Shown: one piece after another, positions 1 to 35,897 of the stretch
Position numbering within the stretch: position 1 is the first letter of the stretch
Layout: each line of letters opens with the position of its first letter
Source of the DNA: Eukaryota sp. TZLM1-RC
Taxonomy: Eukaryota > Protista > Metamonada: BaSk clade
NCBI GenBank assembly: GCA_040285825.1
Contig: JAUPSS010000003.1
Span: forward strand, 1,922,001-1,986,000
Length of the DNA stretch: 64,000 bases
Direction: 5' to 3'
Made by a program: the position numbers and the translations under genes
Notes under the pieces: generated by a model
What the model was told of the DNA's origin: nothing
Database searches by the model: none
Seen by the model: only the letters and a program-made list of their open reading frames with translations

Positions 1-1775
1 TTGTTTTTCAGGAAAACGTTTCAAAAATTCAAAAACGAAATTTTTGCCGCCACCGATGAATGCGGCTTTACACAAATATTTTGATTTGTGAAAATCCAGG
101 CCTTTCAATTCGGTGCTACAAAAAATATGACTACGTAAAAAAGAAGAATCAATATCAAGCAAATTAGCCAAAAATTTTGTTCTTAATTCATTCAAAATTC
201 TGCAAAATTCGAAAGAAATAGATGGTGATGTTGAACGTAAAATATGAGTTAATTTCCCTGAATAACAAATTCTGAGGAAGAAAAATTTAAGATGTTATTC
301 AATATTTAAATCTGAAAGAACCATCAATTCTTCTTCAAAATTATCCAAAAGAGAGGAAAGTTGATTTCGAATTTCATCAAAATTGCCTAAATAACAACCT
401 AAAAAACGAAATCCTGATTCAAAATAATTGATAAAAGGAACAGTTTGATCATCAATAATGAGATCAGCAGGCTCTCTACCAATTAATAAACATTTGGAAA
501 TATTTAGAGAAAGACCAATTTGATAATAGCGATGTTGAACAATCTCAGCAATGGTTCGCAATGAATCAATTGGACCAATTATTGATATGTCATCCATATA
601 AGCAGTTATATGAACATCTGGAAATTCTTGTTTTAATTTACACATTAAAGGATGGATAGCAAGGCAGAAAAAGAAAGGACCTAATGGATCGCCTTGTTTG
701 ACACCAGATGATGATATTAGATTGATTTCCTCATAAACAAGAGTCGACTGTGAGCCATAAAAAATGTAAAAGAACGACTCAGCTTCTGGAAAATGAGTTT
801 GAAGCAAGGGCAAGATGGATGACCTCTTCACTGCATTAAAAGCGTTTTTAAAATCTAAATTAACAATATAATTCGAAGTATTTGAATTAAAAAAGACATC
901 AGAAGAGAGTGCTGCAGAAGATGCACCATCAACTGTTTTAATTCTAAATTGGAAAGGATTAAAAAATTCTTTAGCTTTTTTACCAATCTTGCAAAACACA
1001 GCTGCAGCAAGAATACGAGACAAAGATTCACCAATTGCAATAAGCCGTATTTTTGATTCATTCTTTTTTAAAGCAATTAAGCGTGAACTTGTCATTTCAT
1101 ATGGAAGCTTGATTTTTGTTAAAATTTTGATGAAAAAGAAATCCAAATCATCAATGCATTCAGGACATTAGTTTATCGTGGATTTTAACATGTCAAAAGT
1201 GATCATTGATGGACCAGGCGCTTTTCCAGATGGTAAGTGGTTAATCAATTTAATTAGTTCATCATTAGTTACGGGATTTTGTTCCCAATAACTTACATTA
1301 TTAGGTTTAGGGCATTGAAAATTTTCAACAGGATGGAGACTCTTTAGTTGAGCAATAGTATTTTCATTACATTCAGCAAGTTCAGATGAAAACAGGCATT
1401 GCTTAGCGGAACCATAGCGTCCCTTTAAAGCTAATTTTCGAACAATTTTTTCTTTCTTCATTACTGAAGGACGAAATTTTGATTTCGATGACAATAATTT
1501 TTTATTTTTAAGCAAAAAAAATTTCCATAACGGTGTTACATCCCAAATGCCTTTTTTAAAATTGTTAGTAAATTTTCGAAAACTAATTGAAAAGGGGATG
1601 CAAGAAAGAGGACTTATCTGTGATGGAACATGTATTGGAGGCCTCAAGGAATCAACAGCTTTACATGATTCGCAAAAACGTAATGGTCGGCCAGAAGAAT
1701 TAATGCCCAAATTTTTGGCACAAAATATACACTTATTATTCAGAGAGAGATTTGCTTTAGATTTTTACTCTTTAG
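1..1775 (-). mobile_element. CRE-like non-LTR retrotransposon, 5' part (zinc finger + reverse transcriptase), frameshifted, runs off window edge
   Basis: ORFs 1168-1710 and 295-1146 show CxxC...CxxC (KCIFC...FCESC), GKAPGPS, IRLIAIGE, LDFKNAFN, GVKQGDPLGP, AYMDD and FRFLG; the GGLD thumb motif lies near 100. Confidence 0.9.
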
Positions 1776-1918
1776 ATACGGGATGTTGTGTCTTAAATTG
1801 TTTTTTTTTTGCTAATTTTGAGGTTGATTATTATGTTTATAATTTATCTTTTCTATCCGGTAGCTGCAAACATCTTCTGTCAACAAACCCATTTACTATT
1901 GATTTCACAATGGTTGGA

Positions 1919-1942
1919 GATGTTGAAGCACATCCTGGTCCC
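1919..1942 (+). other. 2A-like StopGo motif variant DVEAHPGP
   Basis: Read directly from ORF 1547-1981; the homologous site in copy 2 reads canonical DVEANPGP. Confidence 0.7.
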
Positions 1943-2157
1943 AGAAAGAGAAGATCTAATTTTAAATCAACTTCTTCATAAAAAATTGATAGAAAAATTG
2001 ATGCGATTATTGACCAATAAACATCAAAGCGTAAGCGAAAAAACAACAACAAAAAGAACTGAACTGAGAAATTTGTATTGAAAATACAATGTTGAATATC
2101 GAGAACAGGAAGATTTTGACAAAGAAACCATTGAAACCGAGTATGGTCACAAACATT

Positions 2158-2982
2158 TGTTGTTGTTGAACTCAAATTGAATTAGTAGGTTTCTTTTTAT
2201 TTTCACTGATGACGTGATACTCGTTTATGAATCACTTTTATTAATAAACTTAGATTTCTCTCTCTCCTTCGTTTGTTCATCTGCCTAACGGCATCAATAA
2301 TTATTGGCCCTTCTTATTTCAGATGACTGTTCCCCCTGTCAACCTCCCGTCTATTTCTTTCATGAAAGTTGAAAGTGTTCTGTTCCTAAGGAGTGGAAGA
2401 TCTATTCTTCTGTGACTCCTAAGAAAGAGCTTGTTCCAGCAAGACTCTTGATCGGTTCTTTTCTGTGAAAGTCCCTATCTCTCCAGAAATCCGACGTCTC
2501 ATCCAGTGACGATGTTCTTCTCAGACATCTACAATCTGTCGTATCGTTCGCCATGTATGAAGATTTTAGTCTGGCTATGTCAGAACTGAAGCTTGATGTC
2601 CGTAATGGTGACGTCCGAGAACGTATGTCCTGAATACCTGCGACGTTTCCTCCAGGTAAAGAATAGGGCTTCCGGACTGAAGTTACCAGACACAGCTTTT
2701 CTGAATCGATTTGCCAGAGGAATTCTTCCCGTAGGTCTCGAACGTTCTCATTCCAACGATGCACCGGAGAATTTAACAAACCCCATATCTTCCGTCTATT
2801 GAGCCAGTACTGTATTTGTCCTCAAAAAAATGGGAAAAAGTAATGTTGTTGTTGAACTCAAATTGAATTAGTAGGTTTCTTTTTATTTTCACTGATGACG
2901 TGATACTCGTTTATGAATCACTTTTATTAATAAACTTAGATTTCTCTCTCTCCTTCGTTTGTTCATCTGCCTAACGGCATCA
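2158..2982 (+). mobile_element. Short non-autonomous LTR element (TRIM-like), 825 bp
   Basis: Identical 139-bp direct repeats at 2158-2296 and 2844-2982 with TG...CA ends; 4-bp TSD CATT; purine tract AAAAAAATGGGAAAAAG just before the 3' LTR; degenerate internal ORF. Confidence 0.93.
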
Positions 2983-5900
2983 CATTGAGCCAAGTTTCAG
3001 TGGCTTCAAGCCTGATTCATTGATTCAATTCAAATCAATGACCCCAAATCAAAATCTTCCCACTGTAATGTGCTTTGATCTTGAAACCAGTCAGGATGGT
3101 TTTCTTTACATTAATGATGGCCAATTTCTGCCTCTTGATGAGATTATCAACAAAGAGAGAAAAGAGGATGCAAATCTTTTGAGAAAGAAAACTGATGAGC
3201 AAATGGGTGGATTTTAGATCAAAAAGTGTTTTTAATTTCGATTGTTATTGCTAAAATTGACTGCCATAATTTCTGTTTGGACAGTAAATATTCACTTATA
3301 TTGAGAATGAGGTCTCAAGTCAGCAGATTACCAGACATTGCTATGGATATTTAGGCAGAAATTTTCTGTGACGAAAAGCCTGGCGTAAGTTCTTGAACCT
3401 TATTGGTAATTCTCAATTCCATTGTTTTCTTAATCAAAATTTAATGCAGTGTGATTTACAGGTTTTAAAAAATAGAATAAATTATCTTGATTTATTATTT
3501 CCAGATAAAACAGTAATTGATGTACTCAATCAACTTTCACCAAGATGACGAGGAGTTGTCATAAGGAAAAGTGGCTTATTTCTGTTAAATGCTTTTGTAT
3601 TTGTTAAAGCATATTAAAATACCCTACGGACATAGATAAAGCAATCTGGCATATAAAATGATAAATGAAATTAAACTGAAACTTCATCAGAAATTTTCCC
3701 ATATTTTGCCAATTGAATGTTTAGCTACTTCTCCTCTGATACAAAATTCGATTCAATATGGGTTTGATCATTGTATCCTTTGTCAGAAACTTCGTACTTT
3801 ATCAGAAAGACAAATTTATTTTATCATCTTATAAAAACATTCAAGCAGCCGTCAACTCAAATGTGTTACTTAAACTGAGATATACCACTGTAAAAATTCC
3901 ACACTTACGTATTCAAACCACATGTTGTCTGAAGCTGAATTTACAATCTTGTTTTGAACGTAATTTAATACCACCACGAATATCTGTCCAATTATATGAA
4001 GCATTAATTGCCAGAATACGTTATATTTCAGTTGAGTATTATGGGCAAACAATGGTGAAACCATAAAGTGCATTTCCACACGATTTTGAAAACTTTGTTT
4101 ATGGTGAAGGAGATTATAGATTATCGACCACCTTTGAACAACAAAAGTTGAACAAAACATTGAGTTATGTAGACCATTTGAAATATTGGTCTGAGCTTTT
4201 TCCACGCTTTCCAATTGATGGATTCGGTAGACCTCCCGAGTACATGGCCCCAGTAATGTTTGCCAACTTTGAGAATAATTTGAAACTAAATAATGAAAAA
4301 CACATTAATCGATTTATTAATGTTTTTTTGATAAACCAGATGTGGAAACTGTGTTAACTGGATTGCACAAGCTGGATGAATACTCAACGTCACTATGTCC
4401 AATTATTTCACTATATAGATTTGGGCTTCGTCAATTCAAAAACTTGTTATTAGTTGATAGAAATTGCTTGAGGTCTTTGTTTCATCATTTTGAAAATATT
4501 TCAGACCTTCTGAATGATGATTTTTTCGATTTATGTGAACAGTATGATATAAGAAATAACGAACTTAGAGACATATTTGAAGGTCTTATTGAGCCATTTA
4601 CTTGTCAAAGTGAGGATTTGGTCACTGACGAGAATTAAGTTGACAACATATTTCCAGTGGGTATACATTTTCTTGCAGAGGCTGTTGAAACAGATCCTCA
4701 AATATTCCTAAAGCAAGCAATTACAATCGCCGAATATATCTCCAGTACAGAGAAAAACTTATCATATTTCTCCTGTTTCAACCACTGTAGGCCCTGGATT
4801 GTTTCCCATTGATACAAGAACAATATAGACAATTGTTAGACAAACATTGATGGACGATTTGTTGCCTGATCAGAGATTAAAAATGGTCAATACACTGGCC
4901 CAAATTACGAGAATCAAACCACCTGAGCAATTTGACCTTTGGTTTCTTGATTTAAACCAACCAATGTTCAAACAGAAGAGCTACAAATTCAACAGAATTA
5001 TCCACACAGATGGATTTAAAATTGCAGTAGAATTTGTTCGTCAGGATTTACAAGGTCAGAAATGTAAGCCAGACAACAAGGCCAGTATTTCGGATATATA
5101 TTGATGACGTTGATGTTGATACTTTTCAAGACAAACGAATTGTTGATTGTGATCCTGGAAAAGGTGATTTATTGTATTTTGGGAGTAAAAAGACTGATCA
5201 AGAATTAGCCATGGTGCCTTACCATGAAACTGAACAACAAAGAAATAGTCGGGTGAAGAATCAAGACGAGAAATTCAAATGGTTGAGAGTGACTCAGATG
5301 TCCTGGTCTTTGAAAAGTAGGATTAATGAAAAACAGAAACGATGCGCGACAAAGTATAGTGAGGTAGATTACGACAGGAACCAAATGATAGAGTGTAACG
5401 AAATGACAATCGAAGATGCAAACACTGAATTATTCGCGCTTGCTGCATATTCGGCAACTATTATGGAGTTCTCAAACTTTGTGGTTGCCAAACTTCGGCA
5501 AGTTTTTTTGACAATTGACTTTTACAGTCTTCACCTGTGGAGCATTCATATAATGCAAGCTTTTATCCACAGGCAAAAGGCTGAAAGTTGGTTGTTAAAA
5601 TACCTTGTTCAGCAGTTTGGCAACCCAAAAGACACTTAAATACTAATGGGTGATTATGGTAAAAAAGGGTCCAAGAATTTGTAACATCATAGACACTTAC
5701 TCGAGGCATTGGATGGATTCGATTTCAGAAAAGAAAGGTATTTGAAGTGTTGATGATTAATGATGCTTTTACTTCAGCAAAATGTCCTGTTTGTTTTGAA
5801 CAGGTTGCTACGCTTTTGTGAGTAACAAATTCCAGATTCTATAGAAGAGAAAAGACTCCAGTTACTACATGTCATGGTTTATTAGCTTGTAATAGTGAGA

Positions 5901-6104
5901 GTTGCAAACTCAGTAACAACGGCTCAACAAAGGTTTTCAATAGAAATAAGATAGTCTGTCTGAACATGCTTGCAATTGCTGAAGCCAGAATGAGTGGTAA
6001 TGATAGACCCCAATTTCTGTGTAGTAGATAGTTTTTGTAATTATTCCGCACGAAAATAGGTCGTGTACATATGGGAATTTTCTCATATACAATTGTTTAA
6101 ATAG

Positions 6105-6258
6105 ACCCAACAACACAACCCAGCAAAGGGGTAAGGCCGGTAGCATTGAAGGTGGAGACAAATACGATGACAGAAAGCCCTCCAAAGAGGACGTATCAGC
6201 TGTCAAACTGATAAGAACAGATATGCACTTGATTTAAGCCATATAGGCGATGACTAAG
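6105..6258 (-). ncRNA. RNU2: U2 spliceosomal snRNA (divergent branch-point recognition region)
   Basis: Minus strand reads GCCTATATGGCTTAAATCAAGTGCATATCTGTTCTTATCAGTTTGACAGCTGATACGTCCTCTTTGGAGGGC..., collinear with canonical U2; stems I, IIa, IIb and IIc all form; ATTTGT Sm-like site; ends approximate. Confidence 0.9.
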
Positions 6259-6898
6259 GAAAGAAGGATTCTTTCCTAATTTGAATGGCTTCACTAGTGA
6301 AGCTATCTAATATAGGATTGAATTCAACTTGTTGCTATCAATTACAAGTGTTCGAAATTCCTCCATGATCGATCTCCAATGCTCTGTGGCAAAATTTCAA
6401 TACTATTACATAACAACATAAGAAATTTTCAGTTCCCAAAATTCCGATTTCCATTTACCAGATTGACCTTTTTGAACGCGCCAAGAACCACTGAGCTTTT
6501 TAAAAAAGAATAACACTTATTTGTTCACCCTCATGATCGAAATGGCAAGTGCTCTTTTTGAACACCGCAGAAACATTTTATAATTTGGAGTGATATTATA
6601 ATCTTTGAGGACAATAAGCATTTTGAGCCTTATTTCTTTGAGGATTGAAACAATGTAATGCGATTTCCTTAATTTGATAAACTGAATTTGTATGGAAAAT
6701 AAGCTTCGTTGTAATAGGAACCTCGATTGTTCATATAATCGTTATTGGACAGTTTTGGTGCCACAAAATGCTTGATAATCCTATAAACGATTATGGTAGA
6801 ATCGATGTGAGCCTATATATAATCTTACCATTTTCAACATTGGAGAACGCTCACTGAGATGAATCAAGTACCTTTGGATAACAGAAAATGCCATTTTA

Positions 6899-8992
6899 AT
6901 GGCTTCCTCATTTATACCCGTTTGTATATGGAAACTTCCCGCTAGTGATGATCCATCTCTCCAGCATCACACTCACAATACATGTGACTTTCAGCTTTCG
7001 ATTGAACGTTTCCTGATATTACTGCGCCGCAGTGTTCCGGGCGTAGTTGTACTCTTCAATTATCCCAATTCACAGGATCCGAACCTATATGATTCAGCAC
7101 GGAGTATCGTTCAACGCATTGTTTCGTCATCTGACAACTTCTTGAGGGCACACTTTTACTCATTCAACAAAGTCACCAAGCAACGGTCATTCAACAAAGA
7201 CAACAAGCAACCGTCATTCTACAAGTCTGTTCCTTATGGCACCCTACGGGATTATTCACTCTCCAAGGCACTAGTGGATTTTCCTCCCGAAATTGGGCGC
7301 TATTATGTTGTTCTTGACAGTGATTTGCATGCTTTAAGGTGGCCAGAACGCAAACCTTACATTAACACACTGTTTCCCGATCAGCCTATGAGTGACCTTG
7401 ATCTATTCACTTATTATTCAGAAAAGGTCCAATCTAAAGACGTACTGCCTGATGTTATGACGACCTCTTATCTTATCCATGACCCCCAATCTCGAGTGGT
7501 AGTTGATATTGGTTTTCGGTTTCGACGAGAGGTTGTCAAGATCTTTCATGAACTCAATAAAGAGAAATTTCATGCTGGAGAAAATGGAATTGCCATCCAT
7601 AGCATGTGCTTTTCAAATGTGGGTACTTCTTCTTTCCCTCGTGTGTTTCAACCAGTAAGACGGAGCAAAGCGCAAACTAATGAAGCTTCGAATATTGTGC
7701 TCAATTTAAAAAAGATTCTTTGCCGAGATGTTTTAGTCGATTACTATCATGATGGACCTCCTGTTGTTGTCAGTATCTCTCAAGGTCAGCGCAATATTGC
7801 GCAAGTTTCTCCAATCACATCTCTTGAGCGAACCCCCAGTACAGACTTGCTCATTGACTTGTTTCAGGAGCTTCCCTATCAACTACTTTCGAGTAGATTA
7901 ATCACTGGTCATAGCTTCGAAAAAGATTTTGGCAAGCGTTTATATTTAGTTCACGTTGTTCGGCTCTTCAATGATCATGAGGAGACTTCAAAGGCTTTAC
8001 TCAAGCAGCTCTGTTCAAAGCAGCTTTTGGCCACCGATTGCTTGAAGTCACATAATTGGTTCGTTGAGCTTAAGCACCTGGAAGATCGTCGTGATGCTGC
8101 ATCTCAGCAAGTCGAAAGACTTCGTGAATACGTAGGTGTAACAGGACAAATGTTGGAAAATGCTGAATATGACAGTGATGATCGGTACTCAAATCGTGAC
8201 CTGGAACAAATGGCAAATAGTCTTTCCAGTGGCGAAGCACTTTTAGAATACCATGAAGCTGAGTATGACTCCATGAATGAACAGTATGACGAGTACCTCT
8301 CTATGTTTAAAGCACATCTGGGTATGGAAGATGATGATTCTCAATTTGTTACCGATGTTTTGTTCACTTTGACTCAACAAATTCCAGAGGATCTACATGT
8401 TTTTGTCCAGTTAATTGACACTTTCATTCTCCGTCTGTATGGACTTTTTCGTGATAGCTATGACAATTTGTTACATCATGCAAACAGTATTGACTTTAAC
8501 GATAGGCTTGGGCAAGTGGAAAACGAAACTGATCACGAACGAGAACAACGAGTCCAATGTGAACAGTTCACTGATCAGTCACATGCTCTTTTAACTGTTG
8601 TAGACGATTTTGTAATGGAGTTCAATAGACGGAACTTAATTAGTCAATTAGACATGGATCACATTGCTTGGCTTCGTAGCAGAATTCATGTTCCCGACCA
8701 CCACTTCGAGATTCAGGATGAATGGGGTAAACTCCACTCTTTTGCAGATAATGCATATGCAGTATTTGAGGGTATTGTCAACTCTCATTCAAAGAACGAC
8801 TTTTACGAGAAGTATCAAAATCAGTATTATGACATTTTTGATGATGTTAATTATTTTTCTGACGATTTTAATTTCTGCTCAAGAATGTCAAAATTATTGC
8901 AAGAATATCCATACTATTCTGATGAAACTGATATTTCTGATCTTGATTCTGATATTTTTGACATCTGTTTTGACGACGATGAGGATTTGTAG
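6899..8992 (+). CDS. Hypothetical 697-aa protein with coiled-coil-like middle and acidic C-terminus
   Basis: Long uninterrupted ORF with host-like composition; no family recognised. Confidence 0.75.
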   Translation: MASSFIPVCIWKLPASDDPSLQHHTHNTCDFQLSIERFLILLRRSVPGVVVLFNYPNSQDPNLYDSARSIVQRIVSSSDNFLRAHFYSFNKVTKQRSFNKDNKQPSFYKSVPYGTLRDYSLSKALVDFPPEIGRYYVVLDSDLHALRWPERKPYINTLFPDQPMSDLDLFTYYSEKVQSKDVLPDVMTTSYLIHDPQSRVVVDIGFRFRREVVKIFHELNKEKFHAGENGIAIHSMCFSNVGTSSFPRVFQPVRRSKAQTNEASNIVLNLKKILCRDVLVDYYHDGPPVVVSISQGQRNIAQVSPITSLERTPSTDLLIDLFQELPYQLLSSRLITGHSFEKDFGKRLYLVHVVRLFNDHEETSKALLKQLCSKQLLATDCLKSHNWFVELKHLEDRRDAASQQVERLREYVGVTGQMLENAEYDSDDRYSNRDLEQMANSLSSGEALLEYHEAEYDSMNEQYDEYLSMFKAHLGMEDDDSQFVTDVLFTLTQQIPEDLHVFVQLIDTFILRLYGLFRDSYDNLLHHANSIDFNDRLGQVENETDHEREQRVQCEQFTDQSHALLTVVDDFVMEFNRRNLISQLDMDHIAWLRSRIHVPDHHFEIQDEWGKLHSFADNAYAVFEGIVNSHSKNDFYEKYQNQYYDIFDDVNYFSDDFNFCSRMSKLLQEYPYYSDETDISDLDSDIFDICFDDDEDL

Positions 8993-9177: not shown

Positions 9178-10162
9178 AAGAAATTCTGTATTTATTCAAT
9201 TTGCACACTTAATTAAATTAACTCATAACTAATGGGACGACTATCATTGAACCAAGATTTCCTCTACAAAATCTTGATCTGCTTGCTGTCTAGCTAAAGC
9301 TTCTCTAATTCGATTGAAAAACCGTGGTAATCTATTAATAATGGCAAATTGAATCCGTGAACGCCATAAAAAAATATCAAATCTTTTCATTGTTTTTTCT
9401 TGCACCATTTTTTGGAAGTCATTCAAAAAAGTTTCTGCTTCAACTGATAATCTTCCATTTATCGAAAATGGGAAAGCAATAAAAACCAGCTGTGTATTTC
9501 TATCGACATTAGCCTCTTCAATATCTTTATCATATTTTCTATGTTTCGCTTTTGCTTTGAAATCCAGAGCAGCCACAGGATTAAGTTTTCTTCTGTGAAC
9601 CAAAGTATCATTTGCAACATTACATGAGACAAAGTCAACAATAGCTTCAGAATTATCAATCCAATCACAGTATACATCACCTCTATCATCAGAACCAAAA
9701 TTATTTAGAGAAAGTGTTTCCTTCAGCAGGGGCTCTTTGATACACGATATCCTTGCAGTTTGTGCCATATTGAAAACAGTGTCTCTAACAGCATCATGTA
9801 ATGAAGAACGATAAGTTATCAATTTAGAGCAATTCAGAGCATGGCGCAAAGTGAGTTGAGGTGAATTCGAACAATTACATTTTTCTTTTGATAATAATTG
9901 ATTAATGGGGATGTTCAAATACAATCACATTTTTGCTACAAATGCTTCATTAGTGGCACACAATCCAAATCTTCGTGGTACAATGGTTACAAAAAGTGAA
10001 GAATCTGACGACTTGTTTTCACAAACATCCTTTTCCAATGACAATGAGTGAAGATCTTGATTTAAAACAGCCGAGCTGCATATATTATTATAAAGATCTT
10101 TTTCATACATTCCAGTCAATCGTTTCTGCAATGTTCGAACAGTGTACTTCAAATTTAAAACA
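9178..10162 (-). mobile_element. 5'-truncated CRE-like non-LTR retrotransposon (family A), CCHC + RLE region
   Basis: CNC..HALNC, RGDVYCD, KHRKY motifs; 12-bp TSD TGACAAACTTAA at 9166-9177 and 10163-10174. Confidence 0.92.
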
Positions 10163-10189
10163 TGACAAACTTAACACACTGTTTTTCTT

Positions 10190-10299
10190 TGTTTGGAAGT
10201 AAATGAATCTTTCTGAAATGAAACTTTCTGAAAAAGAAGTTGAAACTGCAATTTCGTCTTCCATCTGGAAAAGCTCCAGGCCCGTCTGGTATAACTTTT
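10190..10299 (+). mobile_element. Small RT domain-0 fragment of a non-LTR retrotransposon
   Basis: Encodes PSGKAPGPSGITF, matching PSGKAPGPSMITF in the element at 1168-1710. Confidence 0.7.
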
Positions 10300-10442
10300 C
10301 AATAGAAATAAGATGGTCTGTCTGAACATGCTTGCAATTGTTGAAGCCAGAATGAGTGGTAATGATAGACCCCAATTTCTGTGTAGTAGATAGTTTTTGT
10401 AATTATTCCGCACGAAAATAGGTCGTGTACTTATGGGAATTT
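10296..10442 (+). mobile_element. Fanzor family 1 3'-end fragment (RuvC-III tail + conserved non-coding end)
   Basis: Near-identical to 5934-6080, including about 50 nt past the stop codon. Confidence 0.88.
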
Positions 10443-10488
10443 CCAACCAAGTCTTAAATTCATCCTTTCACCAACATTCACTATAACA

Positions 10489-10797
10489 ATGGTCCAAGGC
10501 TCACTTAAACCCGCACATAAACTCAAAAAATCGAAAGGATTACCCAAACTAGCAAAACTCAAGAAGACACAGAAACAGATGTCCAAAGGGCGGGTTAAAA
10601 TCGCTCCTAAGCGCTCCGATGTTTCTCAAAAGGTTCAACAGGCTTTCACAAGGGAGATCAATCGTGATATTGAGGCTACACTTCTCGACAAGGCCCAACA
10701 TAACAAGGAATCTTTCAAACTACTGGGCAAGCAATCACAATCTTCTAAAACCAGTTCCTCCAAGTCAAAGGTTGACGTTTCTGGTCCTGATTCTTAA
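10489..10797 (+). CDS. Small basic protein, C19orf53/L10K (DUF2462)-like
   Basis: Pattern MVQGSLK...KGRVKIAPKR...INRDIE..L..KA...FKLL; 102 aa, Lys-rich. Confidence 0.7.
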   Translation: MVQGSLKPAHKLKKSKGLPKLAKLKKTQKQMSKGRVKIAPKRSDVSQKVQQAFTREINRDIEATLLDKAQHNKESFKLLGKQSQSSKTSSSKSKVDVSGPDS

Positions 10798-11032
10798 CAC
10801 TATTAGTGTGCATAGTCTGTGTTGTTTGTTCCTGCGTAGTTTTTCTTTTAGTTATAGTCATTTTGATGTAAATCTTTTAATTCAAGTGCTGTTTTTAAAT
10901 ATTTGCTTATAAATATAAACCAATAATGATGAATGCATTAAGGAGAAAATCCACCATTTCTCAAAAACTCAGTCCCTCTACATTGCTGTAAAAAGGACAC
11001 TTATTTCATTGTTATAGGCATCATCTGTAACA

Positions 11033-11560
11033 ATGATACATTACACCAGGTCACTCAAGCAACCCCGTGCAACAACGAGAGCAACTCCTCGATACTCTCT
11101 CTCTTCATATTCAAAAACATTTCCAACAATTACCATCACCGAACCTCTATCAGATGATGGTTCTATTGTATCAGATTCGTCTCCGACCATAGAAATAATC
11201 CCCGATGATCTCTCCGCAACGTACAACTTTTCCTCTCCTGATACGGTCATCCATGCTCCTCTTACACCTTCCACCATCGTCACTCCTCTCCTTCAAGCCA
11301 AAAAGCTGACAGAACCCTCGTCAGCTATGCCTTCTCTTATTGTCACTGCATCGCCTATTCATATTGAACTGGATGAAACCCCACCCCCTTCCCCGAAGAT
11401 CAGCCAAGTGGAAACGGATATAGAACAGGAGGAAGAAGTAGAAGATGTACCACCACCACCACTGAATTTTACACACTTTGTTCCTGTGTTGAATGTTCAT
11501 TTACAGAGAGGATATGCAGGAATTCAAGAATTAAGGCCTTTGTTCAAGAATGTTAAATAA
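11033..11560 (+). CDS. Hypothetical Ser/Pro/Thr-rich protein
   Basis: 175-aa ATG-initiated ORF with elevated GC; low complexity. Confidence 0.55.
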   Translation: MIHYTRSLKQPRATTRATPRYSLSSYSKTFPTITITEPLSDDGSIVSDSSPTIEIIPDDLSATYNFSSPDTVIHAPLTPSTIVTPLLQAKKLTEPSSAMPSLIVTASPIHIELDETPPPSPKISQVETDIEQEEEVEDVPPPPLNFTHFVPVLNVHLQRGYAGIQELRPLFKNVK

Positions 11561-21880: not shown

Positions 21881-22605
21881 ATTTTTTTATTGAAAAAAGT
21901 CAAAATTTAAGAAAAAATTTTCAGAAGTTTAAACAAGTGAAAAAGAAGATAAGAGATTTCGGTAACAGTAACTGTTGAAGGCTAAATCGAGCTGATGCTT
22001 CTGACCACTAATAGAGATGCATTGGATAGGCATTTGATATTACTGTGGAAATTAGCAATCAATTTGAAATTGCAATCAGCATGACAGACATCGTGTCAGA
22101 CAACGAGATTATCTTGACTCTTCCTATTCTTCTAACATCATGCAGTGAAACGAAAGAAAGGAGTACATGCTAACGGACCCAATTCCCACCTCCTGCTTTA
22201 TTCTGTTTTTCACAGAACAGCAGAGTTCTTTCTCCCGAACTCGTCAGTCGGGAACTGTCATCCTGCTTCATAGGAATAAACATAAGGTCAGAGCCTCGAT
22301 TTCCTATCGGAATCGTCGTTATGTTCCTTCCGTTGGGGTAGAGTAAACCACTTTTTTGAGTCATCATGTGGGTCATGACATATGTGCTGTTAAATCAGCC
22401 ATTGTCATGATCACCTTATATATGGGATGTTTTTCTTGTTTGTGTTTTGTTTTGAATGGTTATTTTAATGTTTGTGATTTTGTTGTTTTTTTGTCTTTAG
22501 GTACTTTTGCTGTGTACGTGGAATGTTGATTTTGCTTGTGTTTTGTTTTATATTGTTGTTATTGATTTTGTTGATTTTTTTGTTTTAGGTAATTGCAAAT
22601 TGAAT

Positions 22606-23177
22606 ATGGGATGCTGTGTCTAAAATTGTTATTTTGATGATGTTGAATTTGATGATCATGTTTATAATTTATGTTTCCAATCCAGTATCTTCCAACATCA
22701 TTCAACATCAAACCCATTTTCTGTTGAATCAACAATGGATGAAGACGTTGAAGCAAATCCTGGTCCAAAAATGAACAGATCTAATTGCAATTACGAATTC
22801 AAACTAGATTTTGCCTGAAGTTGTCTTTACAGTCCCGATATGAACGCAATTTATTACTACCACAAATATTTGCCTAATTATATGAATCTTTGATGGCCAG
22901 AATTTGTTATGTTTTAGCTGTGCATTATGGGAAAAAAAGGTTAAAACCAAGAAGTGCATTTCCACAGGATTTCAAAGACTTTGTTTGCAGTGAAGGAGTT
23001 TATACTTTAAGAACAACTTTTGAGCAACAAAAATTGAACAAAACATTGAGTTAGCTTGATCACTTAAGACTCAAGCCTGAACAGTTTCCACGATTTCCAG
23101 CTGATGGATTCAGTAAACCACCTGAGTATATGGCCCCAATAATGTTTGCCAATTTTGAGAATAATTTGAAATTAAAT
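22606..23177 (+). pseudogene. Fanzor family 1, copy 2, 5' part (leader + 2A + internally deleted N-terminal region)
   Basis: 22606-22790 aligns to 1778-1960; 22795-23177 aligns to about 3910-4291 (FPRFP.DGF..PPEYMAP.MFANFENNL). Confidence 0.82.
22744..22767 (+). other. Canonical 2A StopGo motif DVEANPGP
   Basis: gac gtt gaa gca aat cct ggt cca, in frame with the ATG at 22606 (one intervening TAA at codon 6). Confidence 0.8.
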
Positions 23178-23182
23178 TCAAT

Positions 23183-26014
23183 TAAATGCAATGAATTTGT
23201 TTTCGTTTTTCAAAGATTTTTGGATCAATTATGTAAAGGAAAGTATGCTATCAATATTATTTGGGAATTTTTGGTTCTTTTTGTCCTCCTTTTGAACAAA
23301 ATTTCGTAAATATTTCCGAAGATTTAACTAATATAGCACCGAGAAATCAGTCATCCGACAAATTAAGTAAAATTTTTGAAAACTAATGTTTTAACAACAA
23401 ATGGTCCAAGGCTTTGTCAGCTTTAAGTCCCGGAGTTAAAGCACCCAACAATGAAAACACAATAGATGAACTAAAAGTACTTCATCCTTATGAAGACCCT
23501 ATAATGGATCAAAATATTTACGGCACATACTGGGAAAATTATCCATTGATGCCATCAGAAGTTTTTTCGGTTATCAAAAAGAGACCACGTGGTAAGTCTG
23601 CTGGACTTTCTGGTACTACTATTGATCATGTAAATGCCGCGATTATTTCTTCAGAAGATTGCCTTTGTTTATTGACCAAATTTTTCACCCAATCATTATC
23701 TGCTCAACTCAAATACCCAGAAGAATTAAGAAGTTCTCGTTTGACTGCACTTGTCAAAAATTCAAAAATGGATTTCGTCCTATTGCAGTCTCTGAGAGCT
23801 TACAGAATATTTATTCTGCGTGTTGCTTAAGCAGGTTAAATGAGAAAGCAAAAAAAATTTTATTACCATTTCAATATGGTATAAATACTGCAGATGGAGT
23901 CTCTTCAGCGATATTTGCTACTACTGTTTTATTTCGCCAAAATGAATCCAATGTTTGCATGTCATTGGATTTTAGTAATGCTTTCAATTCACTGAGTCGT
24001 CGCAGTATCCATGGTGCTCTATTGCAATATATGCCGGAATTAATACCGTATTTTCAATCAACATATTGCACATATTCGAATTTACATTTTGGTAACAACA
24101 TTTTGAGTTCATCAAGTGGCGTAAAGCAAGGAGATCCGTTAGGACCTCTTTTGTTTTGTTTAGCCATCCATCCTATTTTACTGCAAATTCAAAAGATGTT
24201 TCCTTCACTGAAAATGATTGCATATATGGATGATGTTGTGCTTATTGATGATTTATATATTGTGAAACAAGCAACTGTATGTTTTAAAGAAATTGGTCTC
24301 CGACTTAATTTACTTAAATGTGTTTTGTTATCGAATTCTCCAGTTTCCACAATAGTTGATGGTATTGAATTTCAAGCCAAATTATATTCAATTGATGCTA
24401 TTCGTCATTTGGGTTCGTTTTAGGAAATAATGATGAAATTACCAAAAAATTGTTTGAAAAGTTGAACTCAATTTCTGACAAGATTTAGATTTTGTGGAGA
24501 AAATCTTGGTTCAATGATAGTCGTCCCATTAGTATTGAGTTAATTTAATTAAGTGTGCAAATTCAATAAATATAATTTCTGACAAAATTGACAGAATGAT
24601 GAATTTAGATATACAACAACACATCAAATTTACCATTATAAGACTGTGTTTTAGTTCCAATTTTAATCATATATTTCGATCTACAAATCCTCTCGGCACT
24701 AGACCTTTGGCTCAAAAGTTGAATGAGTTACGTGCAAAAGCTCTGTCTCAATTACTGGGATGTAAAATGTTTCAAATTCCAGATCATGCTTACCTTAGTC
24801 CACATTATGGTGGATTAGGGTGGACGAAGGCTTCTATTCTTACCTCGTGTGCTTTTGTTGGTGGATGCAGAAATGCAATCTTTGAGTTTTCCGAAAGATT
24901 TGCAGATTGGGAAGATTTATTGATGACAACGCAAAGTTCCACTGTTTTTGCATTAACTGAACAAATTTCAAGAATTGATGTAGAAAAATGGGGTCGATGT
25001 TTTCCCCAATCATTCAATGGCAATATTCCAGAAAAAAATGTTTTAAATTTGAAGTACACTCTTCGAAAATTACAGAAACGATTGACTGGAATGTATGAAA
25101 AAGATCTTTATAATAATATATGCAGCTCGGCTGTTTTAAATCAAGATCTTCACTCATTGTTATTGGAAAAGGGTGTTTGTGAAAACAAGTCGTCAGATTC
25201 TTCACTTTTTGTAACCATTGTACCACGAAGATTTGGATTGTGTGCCACTAATGAAGCATTTGTAACAAAAATGAGATTATATTTGAACATCCCCATTAAC
25301 CAATTATTATCAAAAGAAAAATGTATTTGTTCGAATTCACCTCAACTCACTTTGCACCATGCTCTGAATTGCTCTAAATTGATAACTTATCGTTCTTCAT
25401 TACATGATGCTGTTAGAGACACTGTTTTCAATATGGCACAAACTGCAAGGATATCATGTATCAAAGAGAGCCCCTGCTGAAGGAAACACTTTCTCTGAAT
25501 AATTTTGGTTCTGATAATAGAGGTGATGTATACTGTGATTGGATTGATAATTCTGAAGCTATTGTTGACCTTGTCTCATGTAATGTTGCAAATGATACTT
25601 TGGTTCACAGAAGAAAACTTAATCCTGTGGCTGCTCTGGATTTTAAAGCAAAAAAGAAACATAGAAAATATGATAAAGAAATTGAAGAGGCAAATGTCGA
25701 TAGAAATACACAGCTGGTTTTTATTGCTTTCCCATTTTCGATAAATGGAAGATTATCAGTTGAAGCAGAAACTTTTTTGGATGACTTCCAAAAAATGGTG
25801 CAAGAAAAACCAATAAAATATTTGATATTTTTTATGGCGTTCACGGATTCAATTTGCCATTATTAATAGATTACCGCGGTTTTTCAATCGAATTAGAGAA
25901 GCTTTAGCTAGACAGCAAGCAGATCAAGATTTTGTAGAGGAAATCTTGGTTCAATGATAGTCGTCCTATTAGTTATGAGTTAATTTAATTAAGTATGCAA
26001 ATTCAATAAATAAA
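23183..26014 (+). mobile_element. 5'-truncated family A CRE-like retrotransposon inserted in Fanzor copy 2
   Basis: RT (AYMDDV), CCHC and RLE motifs; collinear with 48621-51958; 10-bp TSD TAAATTCAAT at 23173-23182 and 26015-26024. Confidence 0.92.
24482..24573 (+). mobile_element. 92-bp family A 3'-end copy nested within a family A element
   Basis: 12-bp TSD AATTTCTGACAA at 24470-24481 and 24574-24585. Confidence 0.92.
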
Positions 26015-26310
26015 TAAATTCAATATTTTTTTTTCTTCCCCCCTTCCGCGTCGAACTTTTTTCCTCTCCATCATGATTGTTGAAAACCTCCCTTTTCACG
26101 GTCCAGGCCCTCCTATTGTTTTCTTAACAATTATTCCATACTGCTCTACGTTGTCTCCCTCTTCTTTGTTGACTCTACTGAATGTTTTTCCATTGATAAC
26201 ATCATCCTTTGAAACATCAATTTGGAGACACATTAGTTCCCTTCTCACAAGCATTTTGTTTCTTGTTCAATTTGACTTGACCATCAGCAGATGTTCGCAT
26301 TTCTCTTCTT

Positions 26311-26547
26311 ATGAAAAGCTTGCTGTCGCCTTTAAACCGCTCTTGGAGCTTCTCAGACGGCCGCTTAGTAATGGAAGCAGAAAGTTTGTGATCTGTTTAC
26401 TGAAAGTTTGAATAGTTGTTCTTGAGATAGAATTCTCACTCTTCTTATTGGATGTTGTTGATGGTTCAAATAATCGTATGTGTGATGAAAAGCTTGCTGT
26501 CGCCTTTAAAACGCTCTTGGAGCATCCCAGACGGCCGCTTAGTAATG
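26311..26547. repeat. Pair of 63-bp direct repeats (26311-26373, 26485-26547) in an unidentified insert
   Basis: ATGAAAAGCTTGCTGTCGCCTTTAAA...CAGACGGCCGCTTAGTAATG occurs twice, 174 bp apart. Confidence 0.9.
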
Positions 26548-26701
26548 TCAATCATGTACTTTTTGGTTTTGTGCTGGTTGTTCAGTGTCTTTTTGGAGTA
26601 TTGACTACTAGTAGTGGAGTAGTTGGATGAGGAATTTCTGAATTGTCGTAGTATTTAGCTCATTTAATAAAAAAAGTCCAAAAAAAATTCAATAAATATA
26701 T

Positions 26702-28471
26702 TATAAAAACCATATTTATGGATTTATTAATGTTTATGTTGACAAATTAGATGTGGAAAATGTGTTAGCAGAAATGCACAAGCTGGGTGAATACTCAACG
26801 ACATTATCTCCAATTACTTCATTATATATATTTAGGCTTCGTCAATTCAAAAATTTGTTCTTGGTTGATGATGGAGTTTGCTTGACTTCTTTGTTTCTTC
26901 ATCCTGAAAATATTGCAGACTTTCTGAATGATGAATTTTTCGATTTATGTGAACAACATGATATTAGTAATAATGAACTTACAGACATCTTTGAAAGTCT
27001 TATGAGGCATTTACTTGTCAAATTGAGAATTTGATCACTGACGAGAATTTAGTTGATAACATATTTCCAGTGTTTATACACTTTCTTGCAGACGCTATTG
27101 AAAAAGATCATCAAATATTCCTAAAACCAAAAACTACAATTGTCCAATTTATTTGCAGTAGTGAGAGAAAACCTTATCATATTTCTCCTGTTTCAACCAC
27201 TGTAGGCCCTGGATATTTTCCTCTTGATACAAGAACAATATAGACAATTGTTGGACAAACTTTGATGGACGATTTGTTGCCTGATGAGAGATTAAAAATG
27301 GTCAATGCACAAGCCCAAATTCTTAGATTCAATCCACCTGGGCAATTCGAACTTTGGTCTAATATTCTCGATTTAAACCAACCATTGTTCAAACAAAAGA
27401 GCTATAAATTCAACAACATAATCCATACAGTTGGATTTTATATTTCAGTAGAATTTGTTCGTCAGGATTTACAAGGTCAGAAATGTAAGCCAGACAACAA
27501 GGCCAGTATTTCGGATATATATTGATGATGTTGATGTTGATACTTTTCAAGACAAACGAATTGTTGATTGTGATCCTGGAAAACGTGATTTATTGTATTT
27601 TGGAAGTAAAAAGACTGATCAAGAATTAGCCGTGGTGCCTCAACATGAAACTGAACAACAAAGAAATAGTCAGGTGAAGAATCAAGACGAGAAATTCAAA
27701 TGGTTGAGAGTGACTCAGATGTCCTGGTTTTTGAAAAGTAGGATTAATGAAGAACAAAAACGATGGGCGACAAAGTATACTGAGGTAGATTACGACAGGA
27801 ACCAAATGATAGAGTCTAATGAAATGACAATTGAAGATGCAAACACCGAATTATTCGCGTTTGCTGAAACTTCAGCAACTTGTACAAATTCTAACTTTGT
27901 GGTTGCGAAACTTCGGCAAGTTTTTTTGACAATTGATTTTTACAGTCTTGACTTGTGGAGCATTCATTAAATGCAAGCTTTTGCTCACAAGCAAAAGATT
28001 GAAAGTTGGTTGTTAAAAAATCTTGTTCAGCATTGTGGCAACCCAAAAGATACTTTAATACTAATGGGTGATTATGGTAAAAAAGGTTCCAAGAATTTGA
28101 AACATCATAGACCTCCACTCGAGGCATTGGATGTATTCAATTTCTGAAAAGAAATGGATTTGAAATATTGATGATTAATGAAGCTTTCGTTTCAGCAAAA
28201 TGTCCTGTGTGTTTGGAAAAGGTTGCTACGTTTTTGAGAATAGCAAATTCCAGATTCTACAGAAGAGAAAAGACTCCTGTTACTACATGTCATTGTTTAT
28301 TAGCTTGTAATAGTGAGAGCAAACTCACTAACAAAGACTCAACAAAGCTTTTCAATAGAAATAAGCTGGCTTGTCTGAATATGCTTGCAATTGCTGAAGC
28401 TAGAATGAGCGGTAATGAGAGGCCTCAGTATCTGCGTAGTAGATGGTTTTTGTTATTATTCTGCATGAAAT
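26702..28471 (+). pseudogene. Fanzor family 1, copy 2, 3' part (WED/RuvC/Zn finger)
   Basis: IVDCDPGKRDLLY, INEAFVSAKCPVC, CHCLLAC, FNRNKLACLNM, RPQYLRS; collinear with 4292-6056. Confidence 0.88.
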
Positions 28472-28572
28472 TTGTTCACAAACACAAAACCACACCCCAG
28501 ATTATATTTCATTAAGACAATTCAGATCTTTCCAGGTACACTTTCTCTCTTTCAGACACTTACACTGCACAT

Positions 28573-29550
28573 ATGACTATTAATTCTCGTCTGGATGAAC
28601 TCCTTGACACCACAAACACCGACCTCGAAGAAGGATCTCCCAACATTGCTTCAGAGAGCGAAGAAGATGAAACAGTTTGACTTTATTGTCCTCTCTCATC
28701 CAAGCAACCGGAACACATGAATGAATTCTATGTAGAAGTGTCTCGTGTAAAATCTTTACTAAACAACATGGCAGAATCCTTAGATGAACTAGGTGCCAAC
28801 TTTGGAACCACAGAAACCTACTATGGATCTATTGACAGTAAGAAGGAGGAGCAAATGCTCGAACAGCAGCGAGAGCAAGTCAACTCTCTCATTGAAGAAA
28901 TTGGAAACATCATAGGCACATGCAAGACCATTTTGAAATCCATGGAAGAGCGCACTGATCAGCTAGTTGAGGAAGAAAACTTGACCTGTCACAACCAAAT
29001 TAGAAGAACTATCCATGGCACTCTTAGCAAGCAATTCTACGACCAAATGCGCAGGTTCCAGGAGATGCAGACTGAACATAGAGACAATCTCAAGCAAGAG
29101 CTTATCCGTCAAGTGTCATGGCAGGAGAACATTGACCTAGATGGTTCTGATTTAGCCCAGTCCCTACTCGATGGTAATGTTTCTGCGAACCTGTCTCTTG
29201 TACAGAGTTCTCTTATTGCTGGGAGTTCCATGGTAGCGAATGACAGACTGCAGAACACATTGGAACGCCACCAGGATGTAGTGAAGATTACGGAAAGCAT
29301 CTCACAACTTGCTGGTCTTATGCAAGACTTTGCTCTCTTAGTCCAGGCCCAAGGTGAAAAGCTTGAGCGATTGGACTCTTACACGGCGGCGTCCGTACGG
29401 TATGTCATTGGAGGTAATCAACAGTTGCAAAAGGCGATAAGATCAAAGAGAAGGTTTAGGAAGAAGGCGTGCTGTTTGCTTTGCTGCTTGACTGTGTTGT
29501 TGTTATTCTTTTTGTTTCCACTGTTGAGTTCTGCTGCTGGTAATGCTTGA
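28573..29550 (+). CDS. Qa-SNARE syntaxin (plasma-membrane Syntaxin1/SYP1-like), two exons
   Basis: Habc helices, ERHQDV...ALLVQAQGEKLERLD SNARE motif, polybasic + Cys + C-terminal TM; intron 28675-28704 joins MTINSRLDEL in frame. Confidence 0.92.
28675..28704 (+). other. 30-nt spliceosomal intron in syntaxin
   Basis: GTTTGA...CTCATCCAAG; contains an in-frame TGA, and removal gives a continuous ORF. Confidence 0.8.
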
Positions 29551-35825: not shown

Positions 35826-35897
35826 CTCGGTCACGGGGAATCGAACCCCGGCCTCCCGCGTGACAGGCGGGGATACTCACCACTATACTATGACCGA
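35826..35897 (-). tRNA. tRNA-Asp (GTC)
   Basis: TCGGTCA/TGACCGA acceptor stem, CCCGC-CTGTCAC-GCGGG anticodon arm, GTTCGATTC T loop, downstream T-run. Confidence 0.98.

Follow-up and report, generated by a model that had tools for sequence, protein, structure and literature searches.

A putative 2A/StopGo peptide ahead of an exonuclease-Fanzor1 gene in a decayed multicopy element of Skoliomonas litria

Introduction

Fanzors represent the TnpB/Cas12 family in eukaryotes, and efforts are under way to turn them into compact genome editors. Whether such a protein can be encoded in a longer open reading frame (ORF) and set free from its leader by ribosomal skipping is the question raised by a 64,000-nucleotide stretch of DNA from the metamonad Eukaryota sp. 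TZLM1-RC (GenBank assembly GCA_040285825.1, contig JAUPSS010000003.1, positions 1,922,001 to 1,986,000 of the forward strand). This stretch is called the window below, and coordinates refer to it unless another locus is named. Two parts of it resemble Fanzor genes behind a leader that ends in the signature of a 2A, or StopGo, peptide, and an initial annotation had proposed that the ancestral element produced a leader peptide and a separately released RNA-guided effector from one ORF. Strain TZLM1-RC corresponds to Skoliomonas litria (PMC11603281).

According to the analysis presented here, both parts are pseudogenised copies of a multicopy S. litria element of about 3.9 kb that probably carried a 2A-headed exonuclease-Fanzor1 gene with a StopGo-released product. 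The ancestral gene would have encoded, in this order, a Cys-rich leader (MGCC..., 46 amino acids, aa), the 2A peptide (DLTxDE followed by DVEANPGP), a patch resembling a nuclear localization signal (NLS), a Lys-rich linker, an exonuclease and Fanzor1. Such a lineage bears on how Fanzor systems adapted to eukaryotic gene expression and on what else the RNA-guided scaffold can couple to.

Two dead copies of one repeat

A blastn comparison of the window with itself aligned positions 1776-1961 with 22604-22786 (78% identity), 3902-4291 with 22788-23177 (79%) and 4284-6055 with 26694-28470 (88%). Copy 1 and copy 2, both on the forward strand, are two homologous, diverged copies of one repeat, and both are dead, with stops and frameshifts throughout. 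Alignment and translation agree with the initial annotation that they have a leader of about 54 codons in common, ending in GDVEAHPGP in copy 1 and in EDVEANPGP in copy 2. The further motifs named at that time (TDG, DPG, RuvC-II with CxxC and NR....CLNM) could every one be located in both copies, and the 8-residue 2A core, observed twice at homologous positions, did not occur in any of 200 block shuffles of the window read in six frames. On these two grounds the earlier observation is confirmed, with slight corrections to the size of an insertion and to the boundaries.

Searched exhaustively with phmmer, the 201-aa ORF at 5034-5636 returned only 17 proteins. The close matches (72-78% identity) were fragmentary gene models of Eukaryota sp. 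TZLM1-RC itself, and the more distant ones came from Skoliomonas sp. TZLM3-RCL (RCL) and GEM-RC1. The ORF pieces of the window, which are short and decayed, had no match in Pfam. Other copies of the window family (family 1) lie at loci L004, L005, L009 (two copies) and L010; they are all broken, and mutual divergence amounts to 11-25%.

The leader is kept in four family-1 copies (copy 1, copy 2, L004 and L005), each time joined to the same downstream sequence and surrounded by different flanks, and is therefore part of the element. This observation bears directly on the explanation that leader and 2A were contributed by a neighbouring retrotransposon, or by chance, and are merely juxtaposed with a Fanzor gene. 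Such an origin could be imagined, as 2A peptides are known at the N-termini of non-LTR (long terminal repeat) retrotransposons and a retroelement fragment (1168-1710, reverse strand) abuts copy 1, but it is refuted by the constant junction at four loci, by the presence of leader and 2A inside uninterrupted ORFs of relatives, by the outcome of the shuffles and by the retroelements of the window, which are devoid of such a motif.

The leader and its putative 2A peptide

In copy 1 the leader occupies 55 codons (1778..1942, forward strand), one more than in copy 2, and its ATG has become ACG; in copy 2 it occupies 54 codons (22606..22767, forward strand), from MGCC... to EDVEANPGP, with a private TAA at codon 6 (22621). 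The core is DVEAHPGP in copy 1 (1919..1942), with His in place of the canonical Asn, and the canonical DVEANPGP in copy 2 (22744..22767). L004 has NVEANPGP, and DVEANPGP recurs at L002, L003, L011 and both sites of L012; decay of the motif is private to single copies, giving HPGP in copy 1 and NSGP in L005. In tested peptides a His for Asn keeps some activity (PMC12338488), a point that is moot in a dead copy. Right after the predicted skip site, copy 1 encodes an NLS-like basic patch, PRKRRSN (1940..1960), which is also found in copy 2 (PKMNRSN), L004 and L005.

Five sites, belonging to four families with an overall identity of only about 35-55% (family 1, L012 twice, L002 and L003/L011), carry the octapeptide DVEANPGP without any residue change, and five of its eight codons show synonymous differences (GTT/GTC, GCA/GCC, CCT/CCA, GGT/GGA, CCA/CCC/CCG). 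A core that is constant across families while its codons vary synonymously points, as far as sequence comparison can tell, to selection on the peptide. The upstream hexapeptides are DLTVDG (L003, L011), DLTTHG (L012) and DLTMDE (L005, family 1), with Trp or Phe at position -16. Biochemical work has demonstrated that the upstream classes DLTxDG and (R/K)DLTxE matter for StopGo and has expanded the core to (D/G/C/N)(V/I)ExNPGP (PMC12846837). The leader-site hexapeptides fit these classes as well as the Trp register of class B (PMC12338488), and the second site of L012 (LKQQLLTEHG followed by DVEANPGP) falls into the Leu-rich upstream class. Canonical core, upstream context, synonymous variation and shuffles together make this a credible candidate StopGo peptide.

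A Fanzor1 protein with an altered RuvC-III motif

The Fanzor part extends over 3902..6031 in copy 1 (REC/WED, RuvC and zinc ribbon, with the stop at 6029-6031) and over 26694..28446 in copy 2, both on the forward strand. In copy 1 and copy 2, respectively, TDG is found at 4997-5017 and 27418-27438, the RuvC-I motif DPGK at 5145-5183 and 27566-27604, RuvC-II with CxxC at 5756-5794 and 28174-28212, and RuvC-III (FNRNK..CLNM) at 5936-5968 and 28351-28383; the second Cys pair of copy 1 is at 5864-5902. RuvC-II reads IND in copy 1, a private change, and INEAF..CPVC in copy 2, which keeps the Glu. The zinc ribbon (CPVC and C..C) is present in both copies, and its four Cys columns are invariant in the alignment of the relatives.

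The initial annotation had called this layout Fanzor1-type, and sequence and structure searches arrive at the same family. For a 115-aa ORF of copy 2 (28168-28512) the only matches in the PDB are PpFz1 of Parasitella (7e-7) and SpuFz1 of Spizellomyces (1.5e-3). The relative P0018 finds the window by tblastn at 3e-64, and P0019, an intact relative of 940 aa, matches SpuFz1 over 418 aa (5e-24). When 18 relatives are combined into a profile, it retrieves the three Fanzor1 proteins of known structure (5e-71, 8e-69 and 2e-34) and thereafter only family-B polymerases. In a fold comparison with the AlphaFold2 (AF2) model of P0019, the top seven matches are SpuFz, PpFz and GtFz structures (template modelling score, TM, 0.60-0.76 when target-normalised, E=1e-22); SpuFz reaches 0.74-0.76 on the same scale, and Cas12f and TnpB are far weaker. 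Sequence and predicted fold thus identify the C-terminal half as Fanzor1-type.

The RuvC-I Asp, the RuvC-II Glu and the four zinc-ribbon Cys align with those of Fanzor1. In RuvC-III the Asp is replaced by Asn, both in the two window copies (FNRNK) and in every Skoliomonas relative examined (WNRN), intact ones included; the set comprises P0007-P0012 and P0018-P0060, among them some intact multicopy genes without the exonuclease. The nearest relatives outside Skoliomonas, P0017 and P0035, keep HNRD. Paralogues in RCL have a ratio of non-synonymous to synonymous polymorphism (pN/pS) of 0.31-0.43, from which it follows that these genes were recently under purifying selection, and the lineage keeps Asn at a catalytic RuvC position under this regime. 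The description of the protein as an RNA-guided effector has to be qualified by the RuvC-III Asn.

An exonuclease domain between 2A and Fanzor

Between the 2A and the Fanzor part lies a PolB-type DEDDy 3'-5' exonuclease, which was absent from the initial annotation and which explains why the gene is so large. Its remnant in copy 1 (3020..3900, forward strand) was revealed by tblastn with parts of P0019 and P0028 and contains ExoI (VMCFDLET, 3065-3088), ExoII (3432-3458) and ExoIII (3751-3771). Intact relatives match the Pfam family PF03104 (DNA_pol_B_exo1) with E=3e-16 to 7.5e-7, and their profile matches the exonuclease domain of Pol delta at 1e-10. All three motifs are retained in L004 (ExoI FDLE, ExoII N...FDL, ExoIII Y...D). 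Copy 1 has kept ExoI (FDLE) and has decayed in ExoII (F to C) and ExoIII, and the domain is deleted from copy 2. From 1778 to the stop at 6029-6031, and without its insertion, copy 1 measures about 3.43 kb or some 1,140 codons, close to the 3.4 kb and 1100 codons estimated before.

A single reading frame in sister families

The window yields only dead copies, and near-intact genes are found in Skoliomonas sp. TZLM3-RCL (L011, L003 and the P0033 cluster). At L011, which together with L003 represents the RCL-B family, an uninterrupted ORF (5929-8709), which is the exact translation of gene model P0020, comprises the leader, 2A, a Ulp1-like protease and the exonuclease and reaches into REC of the Fanzor part. 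Joined to 9426-11165 after removal of an insertion and its duplication, it gives 1,506 codons without a stop through WNRN, with NPGP at codon 54, ExoI at 570, DPGK at 1244, DERYTSS at 1425 and WNRN at 1478. The join, like the consensus of seven family-1 copies described below, was made in silico and evaluated by counting stops only. The insertion, of 708 nt, is the sole disruption of an otherwise open gene. This miniature element (L011 8710-9425) has inverted repeats at its termini (TAGGGTTGGCGGC...GCCGCCAACCCTA) and a target duplication of 8 bp (ATTCATTC). L003 is 98-99% identical to L011 and has a single frameshift.

Two 2A sites are encoded at L012, a member of S. litria family 2. The first is placed between a leader ORF of about 330 codons and the protease. 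The second is part of a 611-codon ORF, which leads from the C-terminus of the protease through 2A and PKKRK to the exonuclease and REC. The RCL-C family (P0033 cluster) has 17 members of at least 90% identity and consists of leader, DVHSNPGP, 67 residues and ExoI, with no protease. In at least seven gene models of this cluster the spacing from 2A is constant, both to RuvC-I (810 aa) and to WNRN (1,055 aa). This layout, known from gene models, is the same plan as that of the window family.

The protease module, Ulp1/SENP (Peptidase_C48), is present in P0018, P0020, P0031 and ORF1 of L003 and absent from both window copies. By its sequence, the family-1 2A combines a leader-type upstream context with a basic patch as at the second site of L012, and family 1 might have arisen by loss of the protease through recombination between two 2A-coding repeats. 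The 2A does not accompany all relatives: none lies upstream of L001 (P0009), whose 5' part is different and borders a retroelement, and no 2A motif was found near the Fanzor relatives at L006-L008, none of which aligns to the exonuclease part. In RCL-A, a SUMO-like ..STQEGG|SCS.. is found 8 residues before the ExoI Asp (P0009 residues 309-325, P0060 residues 933-948). This family encodes a tandem Ulp1-like protease and lacks a second 2A, and the SUMO-like site could, speculatively, be a cleavage site.

A 2A-headed effector in one ORF, as originally proposed, is thus borne out for the sister families (L011, L012 and the P0033 models) and is not seen in the window's own family.

The reading frame of the window family

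In family 1, the frame was followed from MGCC to RuvC with the help of a family consensus, and the two halves of the gene behaved differently. Stops in the Fanzor core are mostly private to single copies, and with these discounted the core is open over 552 codons. A consensus by majority of five to seven copies gives open stretches of 149 + 402 codons; where its one remaining stop lies, two copies read TGG and relatives have an aligned Trp. From the mostly private stops and the open consensus it can be concluded that the core was intact in the progenitor. The interval from 2A to the exonuclease carries shared stops. Its part between basic patch and ExoI survives only in copy 1 and L004; in copy 1 the Lys-rich linker (1961..2157, forward strand) has in-frame stops at 1979, 2018, 2060, 2093, 2117 and 2132.

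Several observations weigh against a continuous 2A-headed gene in the ancestor of these copies, or against the inferences drawn from it. Four in-frame TGA stops are common to copy 1 and L004, and 14 residues past NPGP the same codon is a stop in both, TAA in one and TGA in the other. Shared stops occur in all three frames of the interval, and three separate shifts would be needed to open it, so the last common ancestor of copy 1 and L004 was not a single ORF over this stretch. Ka/Ks of the family-1 leader, at about 0.6-1.1, is near neutral and uninformative. Among the sister families, the evidence from the P0033 cluster consists of gene models only, and the RCL models P0018 and P0028 bridge changes of frame by 'introns' of 25-30 nt. 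The AF2 model of P0019 has a mean predicted local distance difference test (pLDDT) of only 64, and the RuvC-III Asn makes the nuclease activity of the Fanzor part uncertain. Finally, no StopGo test in any metamonad was found in the literature.

The shared stops lend themselves to another explanation, in which leader and 2A of family 1 form a separate upstream ORF of 68 codons, the vestige of a polyprotein, the exonuclease-Fanzor protein is translated from its own ATG (3038-3040), and the 2A releases nothing useful. The conservation of a stop as a stop at the same codon, the four further TGAs, a Met about 10 codons before ExoI that is conserved in copy 1 (3038-3040) and L004, and the intactness of the remainder of the gene in the ancestor all agree with it. 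On the other hand, only two copies inform about the interval, leader and exonuclease share one frame in both, and the linkers of the two copies differ by indels of 6, 3 and 3 nt, all multiples of three. A 2A with only 14 residues after it has no obvious use, and the sister families have a continuous ORF. Moreover, the shared stops are equally well accounted for if family 1 was amplified from a master copy that was already defective here and was mobilised in trans; the internal deletions of copy 2 and L005 are evidence that there were non-autonomous derivatives. A separate upstream ORF is, all in all, regarded as unlikely, though as the most serious competitor of the 2A-headed exonuclease-Fanzor1 gene.

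Other ways of accommodating the shared stops were tried and rejected. An alternative genetic code is contradicted by intact relatives of 940-1,500 codons without an in-frame stop and by a syntaxin ORF that ends with TGA. An intron covering the linker would need a GT between basic patch and first stop, and none is conserved there; a candidate intron GTATGG...CAG of 32-35 nt would leave the upstream TGAs. A compensating pair of frameshifts is insufficient, as three shifts are required.

The internal deletions of copy 2 (22786/22788) and L005 (8061/8062) are independent, and their starting points, just past the basic patch, are no more than about 10 nt apart. In L005, the deletion joins leader, 2A and basic patch in frame to the RuvC-I motif.

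Proposed release by StopGo and possible roles of the two domains

By analogy with characterised 2A peptides, one mRNA with one ORF would be translated, and at NPG|P the ribosome would free the leader, which retains the 2A tail, and then continue. The exonuclease-Fanzor protein would start with Pro and the import signal and could enter the nucleus on its own, and the conserved 3' end of the element would supply its guide RNA. In the larger sister elements, a 2A used once or twice may also deliver a leader protein of 200-330 aa and the Ulp1/SENP-like protease. The partition by 2A is proposed to amount to a eukaryotic substitute for an operon.

The same motif might be conserved for another reason, for instance as a linker or a protease site, with no skipping on Skoliomonas ribosomes and any separation being left to the Ulp1-like protease. 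Besides the lack of a metamonad test mentioned above, many eukaryotic 2A-like peptides have been reported to reduce protein abundance and not to skip (bioRxiv 10.64898/2026.06.17.732966), the RCL-C peptide DVHSNPGP has His at the canonical Glu position, and RCL-A has the SUMO-like QEGG|S just before ExoI. Such a role is nevertheless improbable in view of a full 8-residue core with a validated upstream class at five sites and synonymous variation, of the window family and RCL-C, which are without any protease, and of published work in which 2A was active in the eukaryotic systems tried to date (PMC12338488, PMC12846837).

If the product is released by StopGo, it is conceivable that the effector of these 2A-partitioned, 'polycistronic' elements departs from a conventional Fanzor nuclease, being an RNA-guided, RuvC-impaired DNA binder whose cutting is done by a captured polymerase proofreading exonuclease, and that StopGo sets the stoichiometry and allows separate targeting of leader, SUMO-type protease and nuclear effector. 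This idea is tentative and may well prove wrong. If true, the lineage would form a functional type of its own among OMEGA/Fanzor systems, and a DNA-type mobile element would be seen to use 2A in nature for the first time.

Comparison with known systems

The closest known systems are the Fanzor1 proteins SpuFz1 (8gkh), PpFz1 (9cf0) and GtFz1 (9cer), which have the same REC/WED/RuvC/zinc-ribbon layout, are the sole strong matches in sequence and fold, and are likewise encoded by multicopy, eukaryotic, element-borne genes. In contrast to these, the Skoliomonas lineage has an N-terminal fusion to a PolB-type exonuclease, one or two 2A peptides ahead of it and, in some families, a Ulp1-like protease; RuvC-III has Asn throughout, and no transposase gene is seen in the element.

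Cellular 2A peptides have been described in ORF1p and ORF2p of non-LTR retrotransposons, in proteins of the NOD-like receptor (NLR) type and in a few other host proteins (bioRxiv 10.64898/2026.06.17.732966). The 2A peptides of APE-type non-LTR retrotransposons (L1Tc, Ingi, CR1 and L2, among others) and of sea-urchin NOD-like receptors resemble the one described here in being non-viral and N-terminal and in a position to free the main protein from a short leader, whereas the cargo in Skoliomonas would be an RNA-guided TnpB-family protein of a DNA-type element. A Fanzor or TnpB context is not mentioned in the surveys of cellular 2A peptides that were searched. The lineage would add a further cellular use of 2A to those in retrotransposons and NLR-type genes, and it offers short 2A variants from a deep-branching anaerobic protist. 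With viral polyproteins of the F2A type it has in common the core (D/G/C/N)(V/I)ExNPGP, a DLTxDG leader site, a Leu-rich second site (L012) and the encoding of several proteins in one ORF. It differs in its host, a cellular DNA element of a metamonad, and in being known so far from sequence alone.

Covalent joining of an exonuclease to an RNA-guided nuclease has a counterpart in engineered TREX2-Cas9 and MmeFz2 fusions; fusions of TREX1, TREX2 and T5 exonuclease to MmeFz2, a Fanzor2 protein, impaired editing (PMC12923547). The arrangement in Skoliomonas is, unlike these, natural, involves an N-terminal PolB proofreading domain and is conserved across families down to about 35% identity. Papers in which Fanzor and exonuclease occur together describe engineered fusions, and the literature search found no report of a natural gene that combines Fanzor with 2A/StopGo, skipping by the ribosome, NPGP or Ulp1. 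The remark in the initial annotation that this architecture was not known for Fanzors agrees with this result.

Termini, insertions and neighbouring genes

The extent first given for copy 1 (1778-6080) proved too small. The element begins about 300 nt upstream of the ATG, at 22304 in copy 2, and ends near 6100 in copy 1. By blastn against copy 2 and the S. litria loci L004 and L005, copy 1 spans 1770..6100 (forward strand); it is decayed, truncated at its 5' side, where a retroelement cuts it at 1770, and interrupted by an insertion of 825 bp. Copy 2 spans 22304..28477 (forward strand), with an internal deletion and an inserted retroelement. At its deletion junction (22786..22788, forward strand), located by blastn, the equivalent of copy-1 positions 1962-3901, with linker and exonuclease, is gone. 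A third fragment of the family, at 10295..10455 (forward strand), is 3'-terminal and comprises the last codons and the 3' end.

The 5' non-coding region (22304..22605, forward strand) is common to copy 2 and L004 (4949-5155) and holds a diverged tandem duplicate of the leader start. This duplicate of the first leader codons (..MGCFSCLCFVLNGYF..) lies just 5' of the MGCC start (22356-22605; L004 5081-5160) and forms an upstream ORF of 57 codons in copy 2.

A conserved 3' non-coding end (6032..6100, forward strand) was delineated from an alignment of eight copies and a consensus fold. It contains the hairpin ACACG-N9-CGTGT and the terminus ..GGGAATTTCC; covariation over the eight copies is weak (3/38 pairs, covariation term -0.79 kcal). 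The 3' ends are alike across families, with a short hairpin followed by ..GGAATTT..TCC(ATC), at 6032-6100, 10394-10455 and 28447-28477 as well as at L003 8824-8877 and L011 11166-11219. The word TTCC or TTTCCAT of the 3' end also occurs at or just outside the 5' end of the element. A search for terminal inverted repeats gave only chance matches of 6-8 nt, and no transposase gene was found inside the element.

The insertion in copy 1 (2158..2982) has identical terminal direct repeats of 139 bp (2158-2296 and 2844-2982) and is not a part of the element. The initial annotation had recognised it as an LTR insertion of 829 bp; the insertion stands, and its size is corrected to 825 bp, which adds 828 bp relative to the uninterrupted L004, including a target duplication of about 4 bp. 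It entered the already dead copy 1 very recently. Copy 2 contains a non-LTR retroelement of 3.5 kb (23178..26693, forward strand; RVT_1 E=3.6e-19) that is likewise not the element's own. The fragment at 1168-1710 (reverse strand), which truncates the 5' side of copy 1, belongs to the same retroelement family, and other members of this family in the S. litria assembly reach 98% identity.

The window as a whole is AT-rich (GC about 0.31-0.41), and decayed repeats are abundant in it. Adjacent to copy 1, a gene for U2 small nuclear RNA (6104-6257, reverse strand; Rfam RF00004, 55.3 bits against a gathering score of 46) has its 3' end 4 nt from the 3' end of the copy. An intact ORF for a syntaxin-type t-SNARE (28717-29550, forward strand; Pfam Syntaxin 2e-12, SNARE 3e-8) begins 240 nt downstream of copy 2, and a tRNA-Asp(GTC) gene is located at 35826-35897 (reverse strand).

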